Source: Macrostomum lignano (taxonomy: Eukaryota). From it: a stretch of DNA of 64,000 nucleotides. Where the stretch lies: positions 305,370 to 369,369 of the forward strand of contig NIVC01001059.1 of assembly GCA_002269645.1 (NCBI GenBank). Reading direction: 5' to 3'. Position 1 is the stretch's first letter; every line of letters begins with the position of its first letter. Below are positions 157-64,000 of the stretch, piece after piece. Position numbers and translations under genes: made by a program. A model generated the notes under the pieces. The model was not told where the DNA came from, ran no database searches, and was given only the letters and a program-made list of their open reading frames with translations.

Positions 157-3100
157 TCAGTCGTGCACCTCCTCGGTTACTGAATCAGCAGATGGCACAG
201 GTAGCTGCTCCAGCTGCTGCACCTTCTGCGGCTGCTGACGGTCACCGTCACCCGCTTTCTCATCGTCCTGCAGAAAAAGCGAGCGGGAGGGCGCGGCCTC
301 GAGCTCCTCCTGAGTGAGCACCCGCACCGCATACTCCCCATCAATATCGGCCAGTCCGTGCACCTCCACCGGCTTGTTGCCCTTCAGCAGCTTGGCCAGG
401 TAGGACGTGATGGGTGGGGTGATCACCTGGCCTGGCACTAGCACCGGGATGCCGGGTGGGTAGGCCAGCACCTGGTCGCAGCAGACGCGGCCAGTAAGAG
501 CCTCGTTCGGCCTGCGGATAGATAGCGGATGGGCGGGATAGATACGGATGGTGGGGTAGATATCGGATGGTGGGGTAGATAGCGGATGGGCGGGGTAGAT
601 ATCGGATGGTGGGGTAGATAGCGGATAGGCGGGTAGATAGCGGATGGTGGGGTAGATAGTGGATAGGCGGGGTAGATAGCGGATGGGCGGGGTAGATAGC
701 GGATGGGCGGCGGGGTAGATAGCGGATGGGGGGTAGATAGCGGATTGGTCGGGGTAGATAGCGGATGGCGGGGTTGATAGTGGATAGGCGAGGTAGATAG
801 CGGATGGCGGGGTAGATAGTGAATAGGCAGGGTAGATAGCGGATGGGCGGGGTAGATAGCGGATGGGCGGCGGGGTAGATAGCGGATGGCGGGGTAGATA
901 GCGGATGGCGGGGTAGATAGCGGATGGCGGGGTAGATAGTGAATACGCGGGGTAGATAGCGGATGGGCGGGGTAGATAGCGGATGGGCGGGGTAGATATC
1001 GGATGGGCGGCGGGGTAGATAGCGGATGGCGGGGTAGATAGTGGATAGGCAGGGTAGATAGCGGATGGCGGGGTAGATAGTGAATAGGCGGGGTAGATAG
1101 CGGATGGGCGGGGTAGATAGCAGATGGGCGGCGGGGTAGATAGCGGATGGCGGGGTAGATAGTGGATAGGCGGGGTAGATAGCGGATGGCGGGGTTGATA
1201 GTGGATAGGCGAGGTAGATAGCGGATGGCGGGGTTGGAGAGCGGGCGTGTCACTCACCGGCCATCATCGTCCAGCAGATAGAGACACTCGCCCGACTCGT
1301 AGAAAGCGCTGCGCGGCAGGCAAGCCAGCCAGCTGAAGTGCGGCACCTCCGCCATCCGGTAGGACTGCTTCGGCACCCGGCGCCGGTCCTTGGCCAGGCG
1401 GAACATGGCGTCGCACAGGCGGGACACCTTGCTGCGGGTGGTGCCCACGCCCAGCAGCAGCGTCAGCGTGCTGAATGTCGACTTCTCGCCCTGGATGTTG
1501 TACTTGTCGAACAGCACCTGGCATTGATGGTCGGGAAGGTTTTAAAATTCTGTATAGTCAGTGCATTCGACTTTTCTACTTTGATTTCTTAGGCGCGACA
1601 CAAAATTCTTTTTTTAATTTTACAGTGAGAATCCTGTTGTGTTGTGCACTTTTACGGTGCCTGTGTACCTGCCTCCCAGCGGGCTGGGGTCACCCCTCAA
1701 CTAGTTGTTTACAGTACTTTTTGTTATTCCCCCCTTTGCGTTGCCGCAGCCAGAGGCTTAAGTCGGTGTGAGTTTTGGCATTTGTTCGCTCGCCCTGCGT
1801 GGTGATTGGTCGCGGCCAGCCAGTCGCGTAGTGATTGGCTGGGCCGGTGGCGGGCGTGGTGCTGACGTCCCCCGGGGGAATGGCTGGGGGTTGGTGGGGT
1901 GGTGGAGTTGAGAGCGCGTGGCCCTCCCCCCTCCGCGGGCGTGTGCTATTTAACATCGCTCGCGGCGGATTGGAGCGGTGCGCGTCTCGACTGTCCCCTC
2001 TCTGTGAACTCGATTTTTCGTCAGAGCTATATACACCGAAAAAGGCCATCTACCTGAGCCCTGAGCGACAGCCGCCAGCTAAGTAAGTGCGCATTCTGCC
2101 TTTTTTCTTTCGGTTGCCTAGGGGGGCAGAGAGTCCGTGTGTCCGGACACCGACTCAGCTAGTTGGGGTTGATACCAGTACGTCAGAAGGATACCTACCG
2201 TACGCCTCTACGCCTCTACGCCAGCCAGTGCGTCCCGACGCCTCGCTGAAGGCGGCCCGCACCACTGCGTCCCGACGCGTGGGAAGGCTGCGTGGGTGCG
2301 TCCTGACGCCCCAGACTGTCAGGGGAAGTGCTCGCCCTAGCGCCCGCGTGCAGGCTTAGCAAGGACCCGATTGTACTGTACCCTGGTAGGACTACCCTAC
2401 TGCCGGGCCGGGGGCTGCAGGGATACAACAATCCCTTCAAATCCAACAATGAAAAACTCATATTCACTGACATCCCAAAGTGAGGACTAAAACTCGCTCA
2501 AATCCCACAAACCTGTTCCATCTCGTCGGCGCTGTAGCCAGACTTGGAGATGTCCACAGTCAGCTTGGTGGGGTCCAGCCGAACCCCGTCATTGCGCACC
2601 TCATCGGGCAGGAGGTCGCCGATGTCCAGTACGCGGAAGACGCCGGTGGAGTTGATTTTCTGGCGAAGTTCAGCGCCCAGTTTGAGGGTCCGGTCCAGCA
2701 GCTTGTAGCCCTCCATCATTGCCTGCTTCCGGCCAACGTCCAGGCTGGCGATGAGAGCGTACTGTGGGCTCGTGGAGGCGTACATGTTGAAGTTCTCACG
2801 GAAAAGGTGCTCGTCGAACTCCGGGTCGTTGACGTGGACCATGCTGGCCTGCGAGAAGGAGGTCAACGTCTTGTGGATGCTCTGCGTTACGTAGTCGGCG
2901 CCGCACTCCAGCGCGGTGGGCCGGAAGGCCGGATGGAAGCGGGCGAAGGCGTACCAGGCCTCGTCAATGATCACCTGCGGGATTTGGTGGCGTTGGGAGC
3001 GCGGGTTCCGAAATTGCAAAGTGGCATCCCGGTTATGAAAGGTTCATGAGATGCTTTGAAACACATTGACTATAACAACGGCACCAAGCCGATTCAAGCG

Positions 3101-4149
3101 TTTAAAGGCAGCACTAAAGTACTCAGGCGGCATCCGTATAAACAAACCTTGATGCCGGCCTTGTGCGCAGCCTCAACAATGGGCTTCAGGTCGTACAGCA
3201 TACCATCGTAGGTGCAGCAGGTGAGAATGAGCGCCTTGGCGTCCGGATTCTCCTTGATAGCCCGGTAGATGGTGGCCTTCGGCACAGGGCCGAAGATGCC
3301 GAACTCCCTGCACACGGAGGAGTCCAAGTAGATGGGCCGAGCGTCCGACAGGATCACGCCGTGGTGGACGGACTTGTGGCAGTTGCGGTCCAGCAGGAGC
3401 TTGTCGCCCGGGGCCAGCAGAGTCTGGAAGATGATCTTATTGGTGGTGGAGGTGCCGTTGGTGGCCAGATAGGTCTTGCGGGCGCCGAAGGCCGTGGCGG
3501 CCAGGTTCTGGGCGGTGGCGATGACCCCAGTGGGGTGCAGCAGCGAGTCCAGCATGGGCACGGAGACCGACAGGTCGGCCCTGAGCAGATTCTCCCCCAC
3601 GAACTCGTAAAAATCGCTGACCCAGGGCGAGTTCTTGAGCGAGTCGCCGCCAGAGTGACCGGGCGAGTGCCAGGAATCCTTGGCCATCTTCACATAGGCC
3701 TGCAGCGCATCGTAGAACGGCGTGGCGGACTTCTCGGCCAGCTCGGCGGACAGGATGCGGAACCAGCCGTGGTAGTCGGGCTCGTCCCGGTCGAAGTAGC
3801 CGTCCACGGCGTGGCTGACCAGCTCCTCCACCATGGCGCGCTCGTCATCGCTGAGCACAACATAGAGGGACAGCTCCGGCCGCCAGGAGTTGATGCGGTT
3901 GGCCAGGTCCAAGGCCGCCTGGCCGGGGCCGAGGCCGGCCAGCGACTTGTCAATCACCACCAGCTGCAGGTCGCCGTCCGCCTTCACCGTCTGCATGGCG
4001 TGGTCTCCGGTGCGCGCGGACACGAATGCGATGCCGAACGGGTTGTCAAGGCGAGCGCTGGCCGAGGCCAGGCCGCTCAGAGCCGGCTCCAGCCAGGCCG
4101 CGTCGTTGCTGACGACCAGCGCACGGCTTACCGGCTTTAGCGACGGCAT
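157..4149 (-). CDS. Bacterial-type (class I, AAT-fold, PLP-dependent) Orn/Lys/Arg decarboxylase with N-terminal receiver-like wing domain; 4 coding exons, 692 aa
   Basis: Exons (minus): 4149-3148, 2974-2513, 1517-1258, 511-157. All introns are GT..AG (GTTTGT/CAG, GTTTGT/CAG, GTGAGT/CAG), phases 0,0,2. Joined length 2079 nt = 692 aa + TGA in one frame. Family motifs in order: SPGHSGG, NGTSTTNK, DRNCHKSVHH, TYDG, DEAW (just after intron 1), TQSIHKTL (PLP lysine), STSPQYALIASLD, DPTKLT, YPPGIPVLVPG. The first ~140 aa resemble the wing domain of LdcI/AdiA/SpeF-type enzymes. Substrate not determinable by eye. Confidence 0.93.
512..1235. repeat. Minisatellite, ~19-22 bp unit GGGGTAGATAGCGGATGG(G)C, filling intron 3 of the decarboxylase
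   Basis: Tandem copies are visible directly. The array runs up to the acceptor at 512-514 and explains the Pro-rich pseudo-ORFs 157..1257 and 438..1253. Confidence 0.97.
1800..2090 (+). promoter_or_regulatory. Promoter-like GC-rich segment inside decarboxylase intron 2, antisense to the gene
   Basis: Three ATTGG (reverse CCAAT) boxes near 1805, 1833 and 1968, TGACGTC near 1863, CTATATA near 2027, then a GTAAGT donor consensus near 2083. Motif-level evidence only. Confidence 0.3.
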
Positions 4150-4194
4150 GGCCTGCTGCGAGCATGCAGAGATTTGAGTCCGGCTCTGCCACTG

Positions 4195-5082
4195 CAGGGG
4201 TCTGGCTTTATTTACTGCTGGGGTCTGGCTTTATTTACTGCTGGGGTCTGGCTTTATTTACTGCTGGGGTCTGGCTTTATTTACTGCTGGGGTCTGGCTT
4301 TATTTACTGCTGGGGTCTGGCTTTATTTACTGCTGGGGTCTGGCTTTATTTACTGCTGGGGTCTGGCTTTATTTACTGCAGGGGTCTGGCTTTATTTACT
4401 GCAGGGGTCTGGCTTTATTTACTGCTGGGGTCTGGCTTTATTTACTGCTGGGATATGGCTTTATTTACTGCTGGGGTCTGGCTTTATTTACTGCTGGGGT
4501 CTGGCTTTATTTACTGCTGGGGTCTGGCATTATTTACTGCTGGGGTCTGGCTTTATTTACTGCTGGGGTCTGGCTTTATTTACTGCTGGGGTCTGGCTTT
4601 ATTTACTGCTGGGGTCTGGCTTTATTACTGCTGGGATGGGGCCTGATTCCGCTGGGGTGGGGTCTGATTCTGCTGGGGTGGGGTCTGATTCTGCTGGGGG
4701 GGGTCTGATTCTGCTGGGGTGGGGTCTGATTCTGCTGGGGTGGGGTCTGATTCTGCTGGGGGGGTCTGATTCTGCTGGGGGGGTCTGGTTCTGCTGGGGT
4801 GGGGTCTGATTCTGCTGGGGAGGGGTCTGATTCTGCTGGAGTGAGGTCTGATTCTGCTGGGGTGGGGTCTGATTCTGCTGGGGAGGGGTCTGATTCTGCT
4901 GGGGGGGTCTGATTCTGCTGGGGTGGGGTCTGATTCTGCTGGGGAGGGGTCTGATTCTGCTGGGGTGGGGTCTGATTCTGCTGGGGAGGGGTCTGATTCT
5001 GCTGGGGGGGGTCTGATTCTGCTGGGGAGGGGTCTGATTCTGCTGGGGGGGGTCTGATTCTGCTGGGGTGGGGTCTGATTCT
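4195..5082. repeat. Two adjacent minisatellites: 23-bp GCTGGGGTCTGGCTTTATTTACT (~4195-4635) and 21-22-bp GGGGTCTGATTCTGCTGGGG(T) (~4636-5082)
   Basis: Direct tandem repeats starting ~45 bp upstream of the decarboxylase ATG. The two units share GGGGTCTG and CTGCTGGGG. Confidence 0.96.
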
Positions 5083-6263
5083 ACTATCAACTAAGACAGT
5101 GAAAATACAGACAACACAAAGACCGCTGAGTTCCTGATCCAGACTAAAACACTGTCCTTGGTCCAAAGACAAAAGGATGAAATTATCAATAAATTTATTA
5201 ATAAACAGGAATTAGCAAAATGGTGAATACAAGGCGGAATACTAGAGCGCGCCGGCTGCCGAAAACAGTATAGGGAAGTCGGCACTGGCAGGCATAAAAT
5301 ATAAGGCGTTTTCTATCCTAAATTGGAATCACGTAGAAAAATTTACATCATTTTTCTCCTTACGCATCACCCTACTACTATTAAGTAGGAATAAGTGAAA
5401 ATAGAAATTAAAAAAAGGCGAAGGCCGCTGCCAGAGCCGGAAATGTTAATAAATGGAGACAGAGGAAGACGGTGACTCGAGTGCGGAATGAGCTGCTGGG
5501 CCCTGCCTCAGTTTACTGATAGGCTTGAATACAATAGAAACTAAACTGCTGAAAAAGTGGCTCTCAGTAAAACTCCTAAAGGTTCGTTGAGTTCAGTGCG
5601 ATTGAAAAAGTTCACTGAAATGAGGCTCTGGGTGAGACGACACAACAGGACAGGGAGCTGCGCAATGCTGCTAATCGTGTATAGGATAAAGACTGAGTAT
5701 GCTGAGTACAGTACGCTGAGCACGTGCAGTATGCACAGCAAATATACAGTATGCTGAGTAGCTGAGTAGCTCAGGCGGGCCGGGCAGCGCCAGTCTCAAT
5801 TTTCTGCTTCATTCTCCGAGCCGCTGGTGCTGCTAAAGCGTTGTGGAGCCAAAGAGGAGCTTGGCCTGCGGGTTGCAATGGGGCGATTTGGGACCCGTCA
5901 ATAAGATGTAAGCTGGTCAGACTGGCTGCGGAATTAGTCCATAAATTTGGCCTGCACAAAGCGGTAACTACTACTATAAATACGAGTTTGCTTAGATGCG
6001 TGAACTCTGCAGGCTGGCGGCTTGAAATGGTTAGGCATGTGAGCGATAGGTTGGGGATAGACTTTGCGGCCAGGGAGGCCCTTCTACATGTACATGGAGT
6101 AGATAGCAACCAATTTACAGGTGCTGTGAGGCGCTAGGGTGAGCTAGGATTGACGCCACAGCTGCATCCTTGAGGTCCTCCACCTGAGCTCAGACCACGT
6201 CCCGACCTGCGGCCGTTCGCAGAACGAGAAATCGCGGAAATCGGCGACGAACTTGAGCGGGGC

Positions 6264-6487
6264 CGGATGCGGAACCGGATGCGGAACCGGATGCGGAACC
6301 GGATGCGGAACCAGATTCGTAACTGAATATGGAACTAGATCCGGAACCAGATACGGATCCGGAACCAGATACGGATACAGATACGGAACCAGATACGGAT
6401 CCGGAACCAGATACGGATCCGGAACCAGATCCGGAACCAGATCCGGAACCAGATCCGGAACCAGATGCGGAACCAGATGCGGAACCA
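6264..6487. repeat. Short-period repeat (GGAACCAGATCC / GGAACCGGATGC, 12-bp with 6-bp variants)
   Basis: Tandem copies seen directly. Confidence 0.92.
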
Positions 6488-7489
6488 ACAGCGTCGATTG
6501 CCGGCAGTGGCGGCTGCAGTTATCAAAATTCAGCACCGATTATGAGTAAGTAGGATAAGAGAAATTAGAAAGAAGATTCTGGAGCTTGATTTGAGTCGCA
6601 ATTTTGGTAAGCTACGGCAGAGAAATAAAAATTCTGCATCCGAGTTATGGATCTTTAGACGGCACGAATATTGGAATTAAAAAAATCAAATGAGAAATTT
6701 CTGGCAAAAAAACCATAATGCGATTATGACAAAGCAAGCCAATACGTAGTAAGAAAGCACTACTACGAGTAGGACATCAGGGCACGGCAAACTGTGCAAT
6801 CCGACAACATAAACAGAAACGATTCCGATTTCCATCTTCCTCTACTGTAAGTAGGCTTTTCAGAATAAAATAACAAACAATCGACCATTTCTCAGGCCAA
6901 TCGAATCGGCAAAAAAACTACAAATCGCTGCAAAACAGTTCGCCCCGCCCTGCCCGCATGTTGCGGACTTGCGCGTCCACCTGGCCGGGGCTCACCTGGC
7001 CCACCTACCTCTGGCCAAGCCGGTCGAACTTCCTAGACAGCGACGGCGAGCGCTTCTGCTTGAATTGGTGCACGGGTTTTCGGGCTAAACAGGCTGGGCG
7101 AGGACTTGCACACTGCTGGCTAATTGGCTAATTGGCTAATTGGCTAATTGCTTGATTGGCACAACACCCAGGAGCAGCGTGCGGTGGCTCAAAGGTCACA
7201 TATTCCCAAAATGAAACATAAAAAATCAATTTTTCTCTTCAAAACCTAAGGTTGAAAGTAAAAGCAACAGTGGCAATGAGAAGGAACTGGAGCAAACTGA
7301 GCACAACAACAGCGTATTATAGTAAAACAAAAGGTGCAGTTTTCTGTTTAAATGTAACCGAATACCAAATTAAAAGTGGAGGAGTGCCGGGGAGCTTTTC
7401 TTTACCGTCATCTTGTCCACGGGAATGCTGGACCAGCTCCTCAGGCTGGGGGGTGAAGTAGTGAGGGTGGGAGGATGAGACACGCTCAC

Positions 7490-8230
7490 ACACAAACACA
7501 GACACACACTCTAGTCACATATTCACAGAAACTAATCATATAATCACACCATTCACACAAACTAGTCACACATTCATAAAACTAATCACAACTTCACAAA
7601 AACTAGTCACATATTCACACAAACTAGTCACACATTCACACAACTAGTCACATATTCACACAAACTAGTCACACATTCACACAAACTAGTCACATATTCA
7701 CACAAACTAGTCACACACTCACACAAACTAGTCACACATTCACACAAACTAGTCACACTTTCACACAAACTAGTCACACACTGACACAAACTAGTTACAC
7801 ATTCACACAAACTAGTCACACATTCACACAAACTAGTCACATATTCACAGAGACTAGTCACACACTCACACAAACTAGTCACATATTCACACAAACTAGT
7901 CACATATTCACACACTCTAGTCACATATTCACACAACTAGTCACACATTCACAAAAACTACTCACATATTCACACAAACTAGTCACATATTCACACAAAC
8001 TAGTCACACATTCACACAAACTAGTCACATATTCACACAAACTAGTCACATATTCACACAAACTAGTCACACATTCACAAAAACTAGTCACACATTCACA
8101 CAAACTAGTCACATATTCACACAAACTAGTCACATATTCACACAAACTAGTCACAAATTCACACAAACTAGTCAAATATTCACACAAACTAGTCACACAT
8201 TCACACAAACTAGTCACATATTCACACAAA
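7490..8230. repeat. 21-bp minisatellite CACACAAACTAGTCACA(T/C)ATT
   Basis: Tandem copies; source of the CEYVTSL pseudo-ORFs. Confidence 0.96.
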
Positions 8231-8889
8231 CCAATCAACGCGCAATCACACAAGCCGTGTGACGCACCTCATCGAGACGGTGGCAGCCACCTGAATGCTG
8301 GTGACAGATGCGAAGTCAAGCTGAAAAGGCCGGGCGGTTTCTTAGAATTGAGAAACCCGCTAGCAACTGTCCTGCCATTCGCTGGATTCACATCAAGTTA
8401 AATGCCAAATATGTCAGGTGCGAGCTCAGGCGTGGATTTATTAATATTGAAACACAGGAAAAATGTACTTTAATTGGCACAAATAATTGGATGCGCAGAA
8501 ATTCTACGAGCAATTTGGGGCAAATATCAGATACTACACATGACAGCAATAGCTGCCTGTTAGGGTGGTGAGTTATCACATCACTGGTTAGAACGAGCTA
8601 AAATAAATATGAATTAAAACTGACCTTATGGACAATGGACAATGAGATTAACAATGACTACGGACAGTGAGATGAACAAAGACTATGAACAGTCGGATGA
8701 ACAAAGAATATGAACAGTGAGTTGAAAACAAAGACTATGGGCAAGGAGAGGAACAAAGACTATGAACAGTCGGATGAACAAAGAATATGAACAGTGAGTT
8801 GAAAACAAAGACTATGGGCAGGGAGAGGAACAAAGACTATGGACAGTGAGATGGAATCGATACAGTACTAAGACAAAGGATTTGCAGCC

Positions 8890-22451
<13,562 letters not shown>

Positions 22452-38692: not shown

Positions 38693-39626
38693 TTCGAGGT
38701 GTGTTTTGTGTTGTGTGTTTTGTGTGTGTTGTCTGTTCTAAGAGATGCCTTAAGTTCGACAGTGTCTTGTTTAATTGCATGGGACGGTTTCAATCCAGTC
38801 ATGCGTGTTACTTCATTGTTCAGTTGCTCTATAACAGTGGGGAGGCGGTCTGTCCATTTTGTATAGTACTGGCCACTTTTTAGTTTGAAACGGTGAAGAG
38901 TTTGTATTGACGTTGATCATTGAGAGAATGTAAGAAAAAAATTACAATTGCAAACTACAAAACAAAACTACAAATTACAACTGCCTTATAACTTCAGCGA
39001 AGTTATAGTAGCTGTCGTAATCTTTTACGTAGGTTACTCCATACTTATGAAACCAGTGAGATTTAAGTGCTTGACTAATATTAGGGACATTGATATCAAC
39101 GCCGGGCCAATATTTTCTCATGTACTCGCTGCATTCTAGTTTGAATCGGTACTTACTCTTGTAATTAGGCTCGTGCACTTTGTAATAAGAACCTGGAGAG
39201 ACAACTGGAAACATTTTTAGAGAAAATTTAATTTTTTTTCGGAGGATGAGCACCCTGCGCTGAGGATTTAAAGTCTTAGGGATCTGATTTCGCGAATTGA
39301 ATGTGGGGAGAAGAATGCAGATTATTTTCTGATTGTTTCGAAGATGCTATGGGTGGATGTTAGTGGATTATGTAGGACACCTGTTATGCTCTGATTCTGG
39401 GATAATATGGATGGATTTGGGTGGATTATGGATGACTTTTTGTGAGCGAGTGCGACCCTCTGATTCAGGGATAATATGGATGGATTTAATGGGATTATAT
39501 TTGAAGTTTTCAAAGCGAGTGCGACCCCCCTTTTTCTGATTCTGTCGGGGATAATATAGATGGATTTAATGGGATTATGGAGGACGTGAAAAATTTTGTC
39601 CCAGAAGCACCCTCATGCATTCTACT

Positions 39627-40171
39627 TCTTCTTCTTCTTCCGTCCTCCATTCCTCCGCGATGGTACATTTTTTACATTTCCACTGCGTCTTACCGGTCTT
39701 GATCTTGTCTTGCTTCGCCCGGGTAAGGCCTGTGCAACTGCCATGGTACTGACATCCGCAGTTAGCGCACTCAATCGGTTTGGTCCCCGTAGCAATTTTC
39801 TTGCCGCACCGGTTACACGGTCCGGAGTTCACTTCGACGTCTCCAGCCTGTACAAGTCTAGCCGCTGTCCACCATTTTTCCATCCTTTTTATTTGGTTTT
39901 CGGGTTCTTTGTTATTTTTGATAGGTTTTTGTCGTTTAAAGAATTCTGAACATTTGGATCTGGATGTGCGCCGTTTTCCTTCGAACTGCTTAACTAATGC
40001 AACGGCTTGGTGACGCTCCGTTTCAATCCGAGTGTTCGTGTATCCGACGGTGATCAGATCGTCGGCTCCCGTCCGCCGCGTAGAGGCCCCCGGATTATAG
40101 GACAGGCTGTTGCTGTTGTTAAGGTCAACAAGACAAGCTGTTGACAAGAGGTTTTTTGTCTCCCACCTCAT
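39627..40171 (-). mobile_element. 5' part of the same LINE ORF: 2A-like motif and PHD1
   Basis: RLVQAGDVEVNSGP followed by CNRCGKK...CANCGCQYHGSC...WKCKKC. Removing the Polinton and one TSD fuses this in frame to EFKNRREQ...PHD2-APE. Confidence 0.85.
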
Positions 40172-40600
40172 CAGTGAAATGTGTTTTCTGATCGGTAAAA
40201 TTCAGATCACTGAAAAAAGTTTTGTTTTAAAAAGAAAATCAAAGATGGCAAGTGTCATCCACATAGCGTTTGTGGTATCTCGGAGCAGTTTCTAACTTCA
40301 TACGTACATTTTCATATGTCAAGCTTGAATTAAGACCAAAAATACTTGAATTCGTATCCATAAAACACAAACCTAGTCTCAATGTTCAACTGCAATACGG
40401 TTATTCTAAGTAACCTGACCACATTACGGAACTTCCCTCCCCCTGACATGTCCTCTTGGATCCTGCAGCCAAATCTTTAGCATTTAATTAAATGTTGAAA
40501 TATTCCTGTTTCTGTCTAGTTTATTAAATAAAAATTTAAATAAACAGTCAATCGCCCTGAAAATGAGCAAATGTAGTCCAAATGCATCGGAAATTAATAA

Positions 40601-43600
40601 ATAAATGTTGATAAGATCTATGACGAGCCTATAGAAGACACAGAGCCGCTTGTTTCCTTTCAAAGCAACCAAGAGAAGCAACTTGCAGTTAACGAACCAT
40701 TGAAAAAAGCAACTGATTTTGAAAGGCTCACTCCAGGCACCATCGAGTGGGTGAAGCCCGGTGATGTCTTCAAGATCAACGGTCAGCTGATTATTGTTGA
40801 AGAGGTACAGCATGCACCCAATAACGTATATGAATTTAAAGCGATTCATTGCACTAAAAACAAGAAACAGTCCAAATTTACACTTTTCAAAGACAAGAGA
40901 GTATCAAGAGAAAATTTCACGGTCAATGTGATCAAATCGAAAAGTACACACCGTCTGCAGCCCGATTGCCAGCTCGCTCTTTTCCCAACGTCCCATTGCC
41001 ACCCGCCTAAGGATGTTGTCCAAAGAGCTCGCAGCCGCCTGAACGAAATTCAGAGTGACTCGTCACTTTTCGTCAAGTGGTGCAAGATGAAGGACCCAAC
41101 CCACTGTTCCGAGATCCTTGTGCCGATCTTCGTGTCAGACGACCACGAAATCCACGAGGTGAAAGTTAAAGACCACCTGAATTTGCAGCATGTTGCTGGC
41201 CCACTTCACGGAGAGGTTTCAAATATCGACAACCTGAGTGACGAATCGCTGCTGCTAACGATGTGCATTCAAACTAGCAGGATGCGATCCGTTCCATTGG
41301 TTCGAATCGAAGAGAAGGAGCTTCTCGCCCCCGTTCCGGTAGTAGCGTCAGTTCCCCAGTGCGTGGACGAGGAGGAACTTCTCGCCAGGGTTGAAATCCT
41401 GGACAGACTTGTGTTCAGCAAAGACATCTCTACCCTGGCATTCTGCCGACTGCTTACTAATCCGAATCTTCGTGATAGCGCATGGGGTGAGCAGGTGGCG
41501 ATGCTCCCAGACACCGAAGCTAAAGTAAGTCCTCTCTGCAAAAGCACGAGTCCAGAAAGTTTAAAAATCGGCAGCATCATTTCAATCGATGGAGCATACA
41601 CAGTGGTCATCGCAGTTCGCTGTGGTGCTGATAGAGTCCATGTAAAGATGGTGCAGTATGGAGCTCAGTCATTGGATGAAGATGAAACAGAGCGCCAGAT
41701 CAAGTACATAATCAAGAAAAGAGAGACGGACACACAGCTCAGCGTACACAATGAGATTAAAAAGGATTGCCCTCTGTACCACCCTGTTCTTGGGCCACAA
41801 GGTTTATATGCAGAAGAAGCATTGACGCCTATTTTACTTCAAAGCCTGAAGAAGGGTGATGTGATTCGAATAAGCTCGCGCTGGATCATTGTTGAAGATT
41901 CGGAATTCGCAAATGGCTCGTGCACTGTGGTCGCTATTTTCTACGACAAAAGAAAGCTTCTCGAGACAAACATGGTAATTGTACATGATCTCCAACCGTA
42001 CGGTCACTGCCCAACTTCTTGGGCAAACTGCCTCCACCAGAGTCTGTAAGGGTGGACCCCAAGGCGGAGTCCTCACCCCGACGCTCTGGAACCTGGTCAT
42101 GGACGCTCTTTTGAGTGACTCCCGACCCGACCCCGTCTTCAAAGTCGGGTATGCTGATGACGTCACGGCCATTGTGGCAGGACCGTCTCCCAGCACGCTC
42201 AGGGATCTGATGCAGAGATTTATCCGCAAAGCAGAATCCTGGCCAATGACAATGGTCTGGAACTCTCTGAGCCCAAAACCGTTGCCATTATGTTTACCAG
42301 CAGACTACGCTGGAACATACGTCCTCTGCAGCTCTACGGCAGAGATATTGCCTTCGCGCACCAGACCAGATGTCTCGGGGTCATACTTGACCACCGGCTC
42401 AACTGGTCCTCCCACGTGAAAGCAAAAGCCAAGCGTGCCTCAGCCATCCTGGCCCAGCTCCGACGAGCACTTGGCACTTCTTGGGGTCTATCCCCAAAGC
42501 GGCTTTGGTGGATCTATACTTCTGTAGTTAGACCTGCCATTACGTACGCCTCTGTTGTCTGGGTTAGCGCTACCCAGGTCAAAAGCCATGCAGACCTGCT
42601 CAACACGATCCAAGGCAGAGCGTGTAGGCTCATCTGCAACGCCACCAGGTCCACGCCCTTTGCTGGCATGGGGGCCTTCCTTAATCTTCCGCCTCTTGAC
42701 CTCTTCATCAGGGGTGAGGCGGCTAGAACGACGCGGCGTCTAATTGATGCCGGCGTCAAATTCATTTACATGAGAGCACCTGCTAAGCGGAACCTTGTCC
42801 CGCATAGCGATCTGTGCCTCAACTTTCTCAACGAGTGTCAGGCCAATCGCGTCTTCACCGATGGCATTGCCTCAACGCTCAACCTGAGACAGCGCTACTC
42901 CGTAGCTATCGACTCGCGCGATAACATCAATGACCATTGGAACCCTGGTGAGCTTCATTGCTACACCGACGGTTCTAAGCAGTCAGCCAACACCGGCTTT
43001 GGTGTTGGAATCTTTCTGAACGGGAGGGTCATCGCTACCCACGCTCAATACACTGGGGTCAACTCCAGTGTTTTCCAAAATGAAGTTCTGGCCATCAGCT
43101 CCTGCACTGCAGAGCTTCTCGCCACTGGCGTTACTGGTAAGAACATCATTTTCCATTCGGACAGCCAAGCTGCCTTGCACGCCATCAGTGGCTGCAGCAC
43201 CAACTCTGCTACAGTCCTTGACTGTATCAAACTCCTCAATGTGTTGGGTTCCGCCAACAAAATTACCCTTAAGTGGGTTCCGGGGCATGTGGGGATCCGA
43301 GGAAATGAGTTGGCTGACACCCTTGCAAAAGTTGGTGCCTCCGGCTCCTCTCTCGGCCCCGAACCTCTTGTCCCGATTCCTGGCTGCGTCATCGACTCGC
43401 GCATCAAAGCGTGGATCAGGACTCAGCACCGCTCGACTTGGGCGAACCGCACGAACTGCAGGCAATCCAGAGGCGCTGTCCCTCAGCCCTCTCACCAGCT
43501 CCGGAAGCTCCTCTTGCGCCTCTCGCGCAGAGACATCCGGGCTGCCACCATGACCCTCTCTGGTCACGGCTGCTTCTCCAGGCACCAGCACCTGCAGGGC

Positions 43601-46600
43601 AACGCCACCAACGCCACCTGTAGCTTCTGCAACTCAGGTGACGAAACCGCTGAGCATTTCGTCAGCATCTGTCCCGCCTTCACGCGGGCCAGACTCACTT
43701 ACCTCGGGCCACACACATCTATTACTGAAGCGTGCAAACCCGAAAACTTTAATCAGCTCATGCGCTACCTTCGGGCCACCCGCAGGGCTGAACTCTCCTT
43801 TCCAGAGAGCACCATAGCTGCTGGCGACACTGGGGGACCTCCCTGGGCGGCGCCAACCCTCCGTCCATAGCGACGCGTCGGCCGTTCAGGGACTAGCGGA
43901 ATGGGCGCCCGCGCCTTCCCGCTGTGTCCCCTCCGGGACAGCCCTGCAGCTAAGTCAAGTAAGTCAACAGGGTAATTAGACATACTCTTAACTTTAGGGT
44001 TATAAACCCTAGTAAGCAAGTTGAACCAGAGGGCTGGCTTTGTCGCTATGCTGAGGCCTGGTGCTTCGACCCAGACATTGTGATCAAAAGAGCTCATAGT
44101 CGACTTAACGAGAGTCAGTACTCACTGATCTCTAATAACGGAGAGAATTTTGTGAAATGGTGCAAGACAAAGTGTTCCAGTCACAGGCCAGAGTGCCTTG
44201 TCCCAATTTACTTGCCCAATGAGCACACTCACTCGGTGAAAGTTGGAGATCATCTGAACTTCACATGTGATAGTGGTACAAAGCTCCATGGAGAAGTGAC
44301 TGAGGTGACAGAGTTGAAGTCGAAGCAGAATATTCTACTCTGCATGAACGCGATAAAGCCGAAGTCAATGTGCTGTGTGCAAAAAAGTGAGCTCACTCTT
44401 GTCGGCGCTGTGAGCGTCATTGTAACGGCCCCACTGTCCGTCAGTGAAGCAGAGCTGTCGCAGCGAGTTCTGTTTATCGATAATTTGGCTTTCAAAGGAA
44501 CAGAAAGCTCAATGAATATCTGCCGTTTTCTAACTAAATCAAAACTTGAGCTTGAAGACTGGAAGGACGTAATCTGCCGCAGTCAGCCCTTCAAAGATGC
44601 AGCAACTGAGCAGACTATTCTCTGCCGCCAAAGATGTCCAGATCAGTTGAAAGTTGGCAATATAATATTTCTGGATGGTGTGTACCGAGTTGTTGCCGAA
44701 ATCCACCTTTGTGATGCTGAAGCAGCTGGACGATTTAAGATCGTGACTGTTCAATATGACTTGAGTCTGACAGAGAGTGGTGTGTCAAAGCTGAAGTACG
44801 CGATTCGAGCAGAGGAGACGGAAGCCGTGCTGTGCGTTCACAACAATCCAAGTTTGGACTGCATCTTACACGGTGCTGGAAGAGATATGCCAATGTATAC
44901 ATCTAATAAAGTTTACGATGTACGAACCATTTCACAGGGCTGTGTCATTTCGATGAGAAGAAGGTTTCTGCAGTATCAGCATTCCGTGGTTGTCAGTGAT
45001 CCTACACTGGAAGGAGATAGCGGATCAGCTCAGTCCTGTGCTTCATTGGAGGTTATTGAATACGCGATGAAGCTTACTAGCAGAAATGAAGTTGTGAAAG
45101 ATAAAATTCGAGTCGATGTTTCAAAGCAGGAAGTCTACCTCATCAAGTATGATAAAATCTGTGAAGAAAAGAAATACTCTCCAGACAAAGTGATTGAGAG
45201 AGCCCACTCAAGGCTGGGGGAAAAGCAGCACAACACACAATGGAACAACAGTCGGGATTTCGCTCGCTGGTGCAGCCTTCAGCACCCAAGCAACAGGGAG
45301 CAGTGCAGGATTCCAGTTACATCGGCTCAGCAGCTGGTCGATTTCAAAAGAGGTCACGTTAAGTTTCGTAAGTCGCCAGAAATTTATACCCACGACGCTG
45401 TAATGAGAGACTGCACAGCAGTTGAAGGTTGCAGCGACATCGTCAGGGTTACTCTGTATGAAAATAACCATGAGCAGCGTAGAGTGAGGCTCGAGGACTT
45501 AACCATCGATAAAGGTGAGAGCTTGATTCGTCGGGTGAATTACGAAGGCAATAAGGAATTCGCCACCGATGAGTTCAGCATCTTGAAGGACCTGATTGAT
45601 TGCACTTTTCTGAATGCCGATGATGACGTTAAAGGATGGACGGGGCAAGAGAAAAAGTGTGGCAGTCGAGTCACCAGCCGAGACTTCTGTTATTGGCTCA
45701 AAACTACGAAAAAAGAACTCTGCAGCATTAAATACTTGTTTGAAAAAAACCTTGAAACCATGCAGAAAAAAATGGCGAAACTGTGCTGCGAAGGCGTCCT
45801 ATATGACAATACGGATGAGCAAAGACGTCTGAGAATCGAAATCGAGCATGGAGTAGACAGGCGCGACTTAAGACTTCATGACCACATCATTCTGAACCGT
45901 ACGGTAGATGAAAAAGTAAAAGAAGTTCATTTTATCCTAGTTGAGTGGAACGAGGAGACACACACTGGTGTCGGTGTGACGTACGAGTTTCCACCAGAAC
46001 CTACTGGAATTGGATTTATGAAGTTCAATGGATTTCTTCGAGTGAGCGGCCCTAATCAGATGGATAAGGTCGTTCACAACTCGGAGCCTGACTGGAATGA
46101 GATTGATGACAGGTTCAACACCCTAAGGGGCATCAAGGAGTACCACCTCTTGCGCAACAATTGCGAGCACTTTGTAAATTTTTTGATTTATGGCCGCGGT
46201 AGCTGCCTTCAGCTGAGCAAGCGGGTCTGGCAGATCGCCCACACGTTACCGAGCGCTATTCAAAACCTAGCTTCCTCCGTGACTCGAGTACTGCGAATGG
46301 CCGTCGCTGTAGTGCTGAGAGCGAATCCAACCATGGGAGAAGCATTTTCGTTTATTCCAGACATCCTCGCAGCCGAAGGTGGAAGCATCGCTTTGATCGG
46401 CATTGTGAATTTTGTTGCCTGGCTACTGCTTCGACATCGCCGCGCAAACAGTGGGATGTCCCTTCAGGAGTACCAGGAGAGAAGGCTGGGCATCCTGTGC
46501 CGCGCACTTATTCCCATCGCGGGAAGCATCGCAGTAGCACTCATCACATTCTTCAACCCTTTCTCGGCAGGCCTGACTGGCGCAGGTGTCGGTGTTGGTG

Positions 46601-46671
46601 TCACGACCTTCGGAATTGCCTGTGCCATACCGAAGCTGCTGGTTATTATCAAGGCCTGGAGGCATCCGTAG
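40601..46671 (+). pseudogene. Large tandem LRAT/PLAAT-like (permuted NlpC/P60) repeat protein with C-terminal hydrophobic segments, interrupted by a LINE
   Basis: Joining 40700-41980 to 43978-46671 gives one stop-free 1,324-codon frame, open upstream to 40601. Repeated V-x-x-RA-x-SRL...F-x-x-WC motifs and a final YHLLRNNCEHFVNF. Two or three hydrophobic helices at the C-terminus. No in-frame ATG at the 5' end (possible acceptor at 40615, or ATG 40563 with a 1-nt indel). Confidence 0.75.
41981..43970 (+). mobile_element. 5'-truncated LOA/R1-group LINE (RT C-terminal part, RNase H, Cys/His motif)
   Basis: TSD GGTAATT at 41974-41980 and 43971-43977. RT: PQGGVLTPTLW, GYADD. RNase H: YTDGSK, VFQNEVLAI, SDSQAAL, WVPGHVGIRGNELAD. 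Then CSFC...ETAEHF..CP. Short-repeat 3' tail AAGTCAAGTAAGTCAA. Confidence 0.93.
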
Positions 46672-48711: not shown

Positions 48712-49009
48712 TAATACACCTGCTCCGATTGGGCCAGATGTGCAACTGACAGCTCAGCCGCAGCTATTGCGTGGCGCATCTGACGGCTGCATACGGCTAT
48801 TCAGTCCACGGACTGGAGGTCGCCACACACACTCTCTCAATTACCCCAGCTAATGCTGGCACCCATTTTACAGCAGGGTGAACTCAACTTCTGAGGCAAT
48901 GCAGAGTTAAATGTCTTGCTTAAAGACACAAATTGTTCCAGTGAGATCGAGAATCGAACCGACGACCTACAAGTCGTGAGTCCGACGCTCTAACCACTAA
49001 GCTACAACC
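48712..49009 (-). mobile_element. tRNA-derived SINE
   Basis: 5' head GGTTGTAGCTTAGTGGTTAGAGCG with A box (TAGCTTAGTGG) and B box (GGTTCGATTC). Body GTGTCTTTAAGCAAGACATTTAACTC...CACCCTGCTGTAAAATGGGTGCC resembles conserved central SINE domains (V/Meta/Nin type). Confidence 0.8.
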
Positions 49010-63900: not shown

Positions 63901-64000
63901 GTCCCCCCTGCTCAGTACATTAATATGCAGAAAGTACTTTAGTGTACTTCGACAGGAACCATTGTGAGTACGAAGCTGAAAACTGAGATCTGGAAGGAAA
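54960..64000. repeat. Satellite DNA, 170-171-bp monomer, ~53 copies, continuing past the window end
   Basis: Monomer AAAGTACTTTAGTGTACTTCGACAAGAACCATTGTGAGTACGAAGCTGAAAACTGAGATCTGGAAGG...CCCCCTGCTCAGTACATTAATATGCAG. Spacing read at 54961, 55131, 55301, 55471, 55642. No sustained ORF. Confidence 0.98.

Follow-up and report, generated by a model that had tools for sequence, protein, structure and literature searches.

A LINE-split gene of Macrostomum lignano for a nine-module LRAT-like protein with one catalytic-type module

The DNA analysed here, called the window throughout, is a stretch of 64,000 nucleotides from the flatworm Macrostomum lignano (contig NIVC01001059.1, positions 305,370 to 369,369). 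It carries a gene for a protein built of nine tandem modules related to the LRAT domain (Pfam PF04970), the last of which is the only one to retain the Cys of the catalytic NCEHF motif and is followed by a hydrophobic tail. The gene consists of two frames on the plus strand, 40601-41981 and 43972-46671, which are split by a long interspersed nuclear element (LINE). Open reading frame (ORF) 1 covers 40700-42049 (+), and the same frame is open from 40601, after a TAA at 40598-40600. ORF2 covers 44080-46671 (+) in a frame that is open from 43966 and that ends in a TAG stop codon at 46669-46671. Against the Pfam LRAT family ORF2 scores 77 bits (E 2e-21).

The sequence between the two ORFs matches Pfam RVT_1 (E 5e-8) and RNase_H (E 3e-11). 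The reverse transcriptase (RT) piece begins in the middle of the domain at ~41982, and a 526-residue ORF with RNase H and zinc knuckle ends at 43870. The element is thus a 5'-truncated LINE of 2.0 kb, lying in sense orientation within module A2. A 7-bp target duplication, GGTAATT, is found at both junctions (left copy 41975-41981, right copy 43972-43978), which defines the LINE as 41982-43971. Joining 40601-41974 to 43972-46671 restores the empty site and gives 1,357 codons (4.07 kb) with zero internal stops. Neither a second copy of the inserted LINE nor a paralogue of the window gene was found elsewhere in the 64 kb. Inside the LINE, the RT fragment (41979-42419) overlaps the RNase H/zinc-knuckle ORF (42290-43870) in another frame, so that this copy of the element has at least one frameshift or uses the frame overlap.

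The joined protein has the architecture A1-B1-C1-A2-B2-C2-A3-B3-C3, that is (A-B-C) three times, followed by a hydrophobic tail of ~150 residues. Module borders were set from alignment, residue numbers refer to the joined 1,357-codon protein, and percentages are hhalign probabilities. The features of the gene, all on the plus strand, are:

40601-40720 (+), N-terminal leader of 40 codons with neither ATG nor GTG in frame; its counterpart in the paralogues P0001 and P0002, to which it aligns, is an N-terminus of low conservation
40721-41104 (+), A1, residues 41-168; full LRAT-like module, catalytically dead; A1 to A2 99.8%; no Pfam match of its own
41105-41503 (+), B1, residues 169-301; divergent LRAT-like module, keeps GDH.. 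and LHGEV (His); B1 to B2 99.7%
41504-41818 (+), C1, residues 302-406; beta-only half module with G.II and VHN motifs and without the Cys helix; C1 to C2 99.5%
41819-41981 (+), first half of A2 (residues 407-529), up to the LINE insertion point
41982-43971 (+), LINE, defined by Pfam RVT_1/RNase_H and the junction sequences; 3' end with a TAAGTCAAG-like short repeat
43972-44184 (+), second half of A2; joined A2 matches Pfam LRAT at 2.1e-8, frame continuous over the empty site
44185-44583 (+), B2, residues 530-662; divergent LRAT-like module, from a predicted structure and hhalign (72%)
44584-44916 (+), C2, residues 663-773; beta-only half module, 79% to the N-terminal half of LRAT
44917-45294 (+), A3, residues 774-899; full LRAT domain, dead; Pfam LRAT 1.2e-8; A2 to A3 98.6%
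45295-45795 (+), B3, residues 900-1066; LRAT-like, dead; 95.9%; the best-conserved module
45796-46221 (+), C3, residues 1067-1208; the sole catalytic-type LRAT domain; Pfam LRAT 4e-7
46222-46671 (+), tail, residues 1209-1357; amphipathic stretch and three hydrophobic segments (Kyte-Doolittle)

The residues found at the place of the NCEHF motif differ between the modules:

41054-41071 (+), A1, SDSSLF
44134-44151 (+), A2, NNGENF
45244-45261 (+), A3, NNSRDF
45670-45687 (+), B3, VTSRDF
46156-46173 (+), C3, NNCEHF, with the Cys at 46162-46164
B1, ISTLAF; B2, SSMNIC

A preliminary description of this DNA, made from its letters alone, had proposed a protein of about 1,320 residues with eight to nine modules. 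Nine modules are indeed present, but the open frame is 1,357 residues long. The same description had seen a three-module block repeated twice with a period of ~380 residues, and this is borne out by the comparison of block 1 with block 2 (31-32% identity over 407-465 residues, E 4e-46 to 3e-54) and by hhalign probabilities of at least 99.5% for each module pair. Its further observations that only the last module keeps NCEHF and that hydrophobic helices follow this module also agree with our results: the motifs that it named were located in A1, A2, A3, B3 and C3, and a Kyte-Doolittle scan placed three hydrophobic segments in the tail, at residues of about 1256-1280, 1297-1322 and 1326-1353.

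The Cys of NCEHF is confined to C3 and is missing from the other eight modules. Among the M. lignano paralogues the residue in its place varies (A1 S/K/D, A2 G/A/S, A3 S/D/G, B3 S/D and B1/B2 S/T/K/R), so that these modules have no conserved nucleophile. In C3, the first His, within VHFILVEW (45928-45930), aligns with a conserved His of the profile built from related proteins of other phyla (the outgroup, see below), and the order is the permuted one, with His before Cys. When the Cys helix of C3 was compared with PDB sequences, PLAAT2 and PLAAT3 were the best matches (E 1e-4), and NNCEHF was aligned to their NCEHF. The B modules of all Macrostomum paralogues share invariant H16, D22-H23, H35 and W126 as well as a near-invariant C113, and the C modules keep G.I, Y, K, E and VH(N)..C.L. 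A possible role for this conserved set of His and Cys residues in B and C modules is that of a metal or ligand site.

A protein search with ORF2 returned five matches only, all of them M. lignano proteins annotated as "LRAT domain-containing" or hypothetical. The joined window protein aligns end to end, LINE junction included, with two of these relatives at 44% identity: P0001 (BOX15_Mlig000580g1, 1,379 residues) and P0002 (Mlig026729g1, 1,382 residues), where P-numbers are labels of proteins found in this analysis. Both match the window protein in the number and order of modules, nine in all, and in the tail. Unlike the window copy they are intact, possess an ATG and lack the LINE. Intact paralogues, for which the preliminary description had proposed a search, thus exist and are colinear with the gene of the window. 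That the gene could be reconstructed, as the description had assumed, holds in so far as the joined frame aligns with these paralogues, but the copy in the window is itself probably dead, carrying the LINE and lacking a start codon. A closer relative or an intact copy of the window protein was not found among ~15 billion proteins.

The two intact genes are single uninterrupted ORFs (10001-14149 on locus L001 and 3001-7140 on locus L002), and the absence of introns, already remarked upon for the window gene, is therefore a trait of the family. In P0003-P0007, which are shorter paralogues from M. lignano, it is simply the first A-B-C unit that is missing. Family genes of M. lignano occur in tandem clusters with partial duplicates. 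Exemplifying this, L002 (M. lignano NIVC01001606.1) carries a partial tandem duplicate of residues 631-1379, at 93% identity, directly 3' of the P0001 gene, and beyond it a further diverged paralogue at 31% identity (region coordinates 7848-10098 and 11998-13101). The database gene model 3001-10101 of this locus seems to merge the P0001 gene with its partial duplicate.

Relatives are not restricted to M. lignano. When 1.84 billion representatives were searched with a profile, 913 matched at E<1e-3, many of them proteins of 400-1,700 residues with 3-10 separate A-type module matches each. The outgroup members that we can name, all uncharacterised, come from the bivalves Potamilus (KAK3603616.1), Sinanodonta (KAL3874825.1), Mercenaria (XP_053378500.1) and three Mytilus species (e.g. 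XP_076105740.1), and from the hemichordate Ptychodera flava. As in the window protein, one Cys/His module adjoins a hydrophobic block of ~150 residues and is accompanied by tandem modules (2-11 in number) in which the Cys is replaced, mostly by Ser. The order, however, is the mirror image of that in Macrostomum: module 1 carries His-His-Cys, the hydrophobic block follows, and the Cys-less array is C-terminal. Moreover, all outgroup modules are of the A type, without the B and C types and the (A-B-C) super-repeat of Macrostomum. Exactly one Cys module, in first position, was found in 39 of the 50 outgroup proteins with at least three modules. The window protein agrees with this pattern in having at least three modules with one Cys module and in the contact of that module with the hydrophobic block, and departs from it in the catalytic-first order and in the Ser at the place of the Cys. 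Owing to the reversed order, the variable replacing residue and the lineage-specific B and C modules, we regard the Macrostomum proteins as a branch or variant of their own. With a hidden Markov model (HMM) of the tail, the block that comes after module 1 was matched in P0081, P0112, P0054, P0062, P0039 and P0057 (E 1e-5 to 3e-3 in a set of 170 sequences); these matches are weak and positionally consistent.

Standard Pfam annotation shows one LRAT stretch in six out of seven array proteins scanned (three in Ptychodera P0067), and the array architecture has therefore gone unnoticed. The preliminary description had allowed for the architecture being an already described family of known function. 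A literature search on multi-LRAT arrays, on LRAT in Macrostomum and on LRAT in bivalves found no relevant paper, and the design is unannotated in the relatives from bivalves and Ptychodera. Judged by these sequences, the architecture is not a one-off: an undescribed family is present in M. lignano, bivalves and Ptychodera, and an architecture of many LRAT/PLAAT modules, of which one is live, is conserved in several invertebrate phyla.

In the outgroup dead modules the place of the Cys is taken by Ser (155 instances) or Ala, and the first His is changed to D/E/K/Q. The bivalve modules (P0009, P0010, P0012 and others) almost always read N-R-S at the NCE place, which keeps a Ser at the nucleophile position and at the same time creates an N-x-S glycosylation sequon, raising the question of the membrane side on which the array lies. 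One could speculate that the Ser-bearing modules are active, as Ser-His hydrolase or acyltransferase sites with a retained His, so that the protein would have several active centres. The frequency of Ser, the retention of the second His in 247 out of 367 cases and the invariant H16, H23 and H35 of the B modules agree with this speculation. We nevertheless find it very unlikely, as the residue in question is not conserved among the Macrostomum paralogues and the first His is lost from the outgroup arrays; furthermore, we know of no NlpC/P60 enzyme with a Ser nucleophile.

Whether every module descends from an LRAT domain is less evident than the repeat itself. Among single modules, Pfam LRAT detects A2, A3 and C3 (34.9, 35.7 and 30.8 bits, cutoff 24.3) and does not detect A1, B1, B2, B3, C1 or C2. 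A profile of the outgroup LRAT arrays was built from 200 outgroup modules and compared by hhalign with pooled profiles of the Macrostomum modules. The A modules reached a probability of 99.9%, B3 95.9% (P 6e-9, 121 columns), C3 94.8%, C1/C2 79% (76 columns, restricted to the N-terminal beta half) and B1/B2 72% (P 3e-5, 109 columns), whereas the hydrophobic tail, used as a negative control, gave 0.2%. The register of these alignments is the expected one, with the GD.I strand and the His strand followed by the helix that bears the Cys equivalent. Profile HMMs of the B and C modules also match LRAT modules of the outgroup proteins, in all cases below threshold.

Structure prediction with AlphaFold2 (AF2) on the 899-residue ORF2 (alignment of 6 rows) gave a predicted local distance difference test score (pLDDT) of 40, with C3 also at ~40, and this model was not used to infer a fold. 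The segment B2-C2-A3 (alignment of 10 rows) was modelled at a pLDDT of 83.3 and a predicted template modelling score (pTM) of 0.74. In this model B2 consists of 5-6 strands followed by 3 helices, A3 of 6-7 strands followed by 2 helices, and C2 of five strands with no long helix. The Ser aligned to the catalytic Cys starts a helix both in B2 (S109 of SSMNIC, second helix) and in A3 (S356 of NNSRDF). In PLAAT3 structures the nucleophile sits at the start of a helix, which is the hallmark position in papain-like and NlpC/P60 folds. A Foldseek search of the model against BFVD found a Catovirus "lecithin retinol acyltransferase" (probability 1.00, E 0.014, 141 columns), a match that could not be assigned to one of the modules. 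Foldseek against the PDB gave no significant match, and its top 50 contained no PLAAT structure; the best matches, all non-significant, were SH3-like barrels of the Tudor, PWWP, Agenet, KOW and CAP-Gly types.

These barrels invite a different explanation of the B and C modules, namely that they are not derived from LRAT but are small SH3/Tudor/KOW-like beta-barrel and helical adaptors, which would leave four LRAT domains (A1-A3 and C3). Consistent with this, Pfam does not recognise LRAT in B1, B2, B3, C1 or C2, direct comparisons of B to A and of C to A within Macrostomum are weak, and a marginal match to the KOW domain EFP_N was obtained at the N-terminus of A1. On the other side stand the 95.9% of B3 and the 72% of B1/B2 over nearly the full LRAT length with the motifs in the expected register, the fact that even the weak B and C HMM matches fall on outgroup LRAT modules, the order of secondary structure in B2, which is that of A3 in the AF2 model, and the near-zero value of the tail control. 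We therefore consider the adaptor explanation unlikely. The derivation of A1-A3, C3 and B3 from LRAT is secure at the level of sequence, that of B1/B2 and C1/C2 is probable, and in our reading the total is seven full LRAT-derived domains and two beta-only half modules, C1 and C2. The LRAT identity that the preliminary description gave to all modules consequently stands for A1-A3, B3 and C3; for B1/B2 and C1/C2 the hhalign probabilities are 72-79%, and C1/C2 are half modules.

The modules are not equally conserved. The window protein is 61% identical to P0001 in B3 and 56% in C3, against 37-46% in the upstream modules and 34% in the tail. The ratio of nonsynonymous to synonymous substitution rates (dN/dS) was estimated between M. 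lignano P0001 and P0002 by the method of Nei and Gojobori, with 95% confidence intervals (given in brackets) from a codon bootstrap. It amounts to 0.51 (0.40-0.65) for the whole gene, 0.36 (0.27-0.49) for the dead modules B1-B3, 0.80 (0.46-1.43) for the tail and 1.41 (0.78-3.15) for the N-terminus with A1. As the last of these intervals spans 1, neutrality is not rejected there. The per-module selection test that had been proposed for this protein thus finds constraint on B1-B3, and a value for the N-terminus and A1 that does not differ from 1. The comparison of the two coding sequences clearly indicates that dead modules are under purifying selection in M. lignano.

It had been suggested that the upstream modules act as sensors, decoys or scaffold, and that the architecture is suggestive of fast-evolving immune or effector families; in such a family the dead modules would be decoys or sensors for pathogen factors. 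The family is indeed expanded and tandemly clustered in M. lignano and expanded in bivalves (the 913 representatives mentioned above), the whole-gene ratio of 0.51 and that of ~1.4 in the N-terminus and A1 are in line with rapid change, and in the window a LINE has cost the family a copy. The interval of the latter ratio nonetheless includes 1, purifying selection acts on the core modules (0.31-0.49), and no signal peptide-like N-terminus and no known immune domain were recognised. Furthermore, M. lignano is a hidden polyploid (PMC10468722), and this by itself inflates copy number. On balance we regard an immune or effector role as quite unlikely. What holds of the earlier interpretation is the arrangement of one Cys/His module beside hydrophobic helices, preceded by modules of the same fold without a conserved nucleophile; its sensor, decoy or effector part is a speculation with circumstantial support.

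As for the state of the copy in the window, the stretch that leads from the upstream stop to the conserved A1 contains no in-frame ATG or GTG, and the first listed start is a TTG at 40700. The spliced leader of M. lignano ends in ATG and takes [T/C]TNCAG acceptors, and ~30% of the genes are trans-spliced (PMC8629364). Such a leader is a doubtful source of the AUG in this copy: the best acceptor, TTGCAG at 40683-40688, is out of frame, and the sole in-frame AG (40614-40615) stands in a poor context. No spliced-leader sequence was found in the 64-kb window. Removal of the LINE as an intron is unlikely, for near its 3' end there is no in-frame, stop-free acceptor for GTAATT at 41975 (phase 0), the one plausible donor. 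As neither half of the gene shows any other stop or frameshift, the LINE must have arrived recently or be polymorphic. Going by the sequence, the window copy is most probably a pseudogene of recent origin or an allele with the insertion.

A functional locus would be conceivable if the LINE were a polymorphism or an assembly-haplotype matter with an intact allele, or were removed from the transcript, and if a trans-spliced leader provided the AUG. The uninterrupted 4.07 kb in the two halves and the frequency of trans-splicing in M. lignano, with its leader ending in ATG, are compatible with this. The donor and acceptor sites just described are not, as the former has no AG nearby that would give a stop-free frame and the latter would put the leader ATG into the wrong frame. 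The lack of a leader in the window, of a closer relative or intact copy among the 15 billion proteins, and a neighbourhood of transposons and satellites make it improbable that this locus still functions.

The surroundings of the gene comprise an integrase ORF, fragments of LINE ORF1 and endonuclease, a transposase, many minisatellites and more than 9 kb of a 171-bp satellite. Transposon debris lies at 27220-28086 (-), 34793-36203 (-), 37141-37944 (+) and 39575-40171 (-), and includes the RNase H domain of a TNP-like transposase, a LINE endonuclease (Exo_endo_phos_2), ORF1-like ORFs with a PHD finger and a retroviral-type integrase core (rve). In the first third of the window, from 519 to 21415, there are about fifteen separate minisatellite arrays with periods of 15-31 bp and lengths of 0.3-0.8 kb each, together with a (CAGA)n run at 9492-10042; several long "ORFs" in this region are translated minisatellite repeats. 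From 54956 to the end of the window at 64000 the 171-bp satellite is present in at least 53 copies of 97-98% identity with a higher-order period of 341 bp, which explains the constant GC and AT skew beyond 56 kb. A dispersed repeat at 48717-49006 is ~80% identical to two copies in locus L001 (17609-17880 and 21169-21363), both of which sit within a neighbouring carboxypeptidase gene. A synteny comparison of the window with the P0002 locus of M. lignano revealed the gene itself and one dispersed repeat as the only matches.

Taken together, the joint explanation that we prefer, at a probability of roughly 0.6, is that of a LINE-cut gene of a nine-module LRAT-fold family whose intact members act as membrane acyl-enzymes with the dead modules as a scaffold. 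Judging from the sequence, the hydrophobic tail of intact members would hold C3 at the membrane. By analogy with PLAAT and LRAT, C3 would form a thioester acyl-enzyme on its Cys, with membrane phospholipids as the substrates of a phospholipase A1/2 or acyltransferase reaction. The dead modules, retained by selection, may bind lipids or proteins without being catalytic and may serve to position the one active site, to gate it or to scaffold it, and B3 may be a conserved functional and obligatory partner of C3. The ancestral cassette would have consisted of a catalytic LRAT domain and the hydrophobic block. Arrays of dead copies might then have been joined to its N-terminal side in Macrostomum and to its C-terminal side in bivalves and hemichordates.

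Several observations weigh against this explanation. Where PLAAT3 has its second His, C3 appears to have Tyr. The first His, present as VHF in the window copy and in P0003-P0006, is replaced by Asp in the C3 modules of P0001 and P0002 (ADF/VDF). Among intact M. lignano paralogues, BOX15_Mlig011640g2 and Mlig027402g1 are examples that do carry the first His. Activity is therefore not guaranteed even for intact copies, and P0001 and P0002 may use another His or be inactive. The outcome of the Foldseek search against the PDB, both the missing PLAAT structures and the SH3-like barrels, and the probabilities of 72-79% for B1/B2 and C1/C2 point in the same direction, and the pseudogene call rests on one assembly.

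A wider proposal would be that flatworms, bivalves and hemichordates share a widespread, undescribed class of membrane enzymes in which one PLAAT-like domain, anchored by the conserved hydrophobic block, is controlled or targeted by dead copies of itself. These copies would serve as multivalent sensors of lipids or of the state of a membrane, e.g. of damaged organelles or foreign membranes, in arrays that were built independently on opposite sides of the cassette. We offer this proposal as tentative and somewhat doubtful.

The LRAT fold has repeatedly been multiplied into long arrays with one catalytic copy, and the dead copies have been kept by selection. Should the dead modules turn out to bind lipids or partners, the family would lend itself well to studying how pseudoenzyme domains regulate a sibling active site, and M. 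lignano is amenable to RNA interference and transgenesis. The locus in the window is itself of lesser weight; as a LINE-disrupted copy in repeat-rich DNA it illustrates the turnover of the family.

PLAAT and LRAT enzymes are small single-domain proteins that remodel phospholipids, degrade lens organelles and serve as picornavirus host factors. The PLAAT/HRASLS (H-rev107) proteins PLAAT1-5 (PF04970; PDB 4DOT, 4DPZ and 2KYT) resemble C3 in the permuted order of His and Cys, in the NCEHF motif and in the hydrophobic C-terminus. They are, however, single-domain proteins of ~160 residues with one C-terminal helix, whereas the window protein has eight more modules and a tail of 150 residues with three segments. 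LRAT shares with C3 the Pfam family, the catalytic Cys-helix motif and the binding to membranes. It differs from the window protein in being a single domain that has membrane helices at both termini and an insert specific to its family, and the window protein carries no indication of retinoid specificity. The vertebrate proteins LRATD1 and LRATD2 (FAM84A and FAM84B) have an LRAT fold without enzymatic function, and are single-domain and soluble with no active paralogous domain fused to them. They are a precedent for dead LRAT folds such as A1-A3 and B1-B3.

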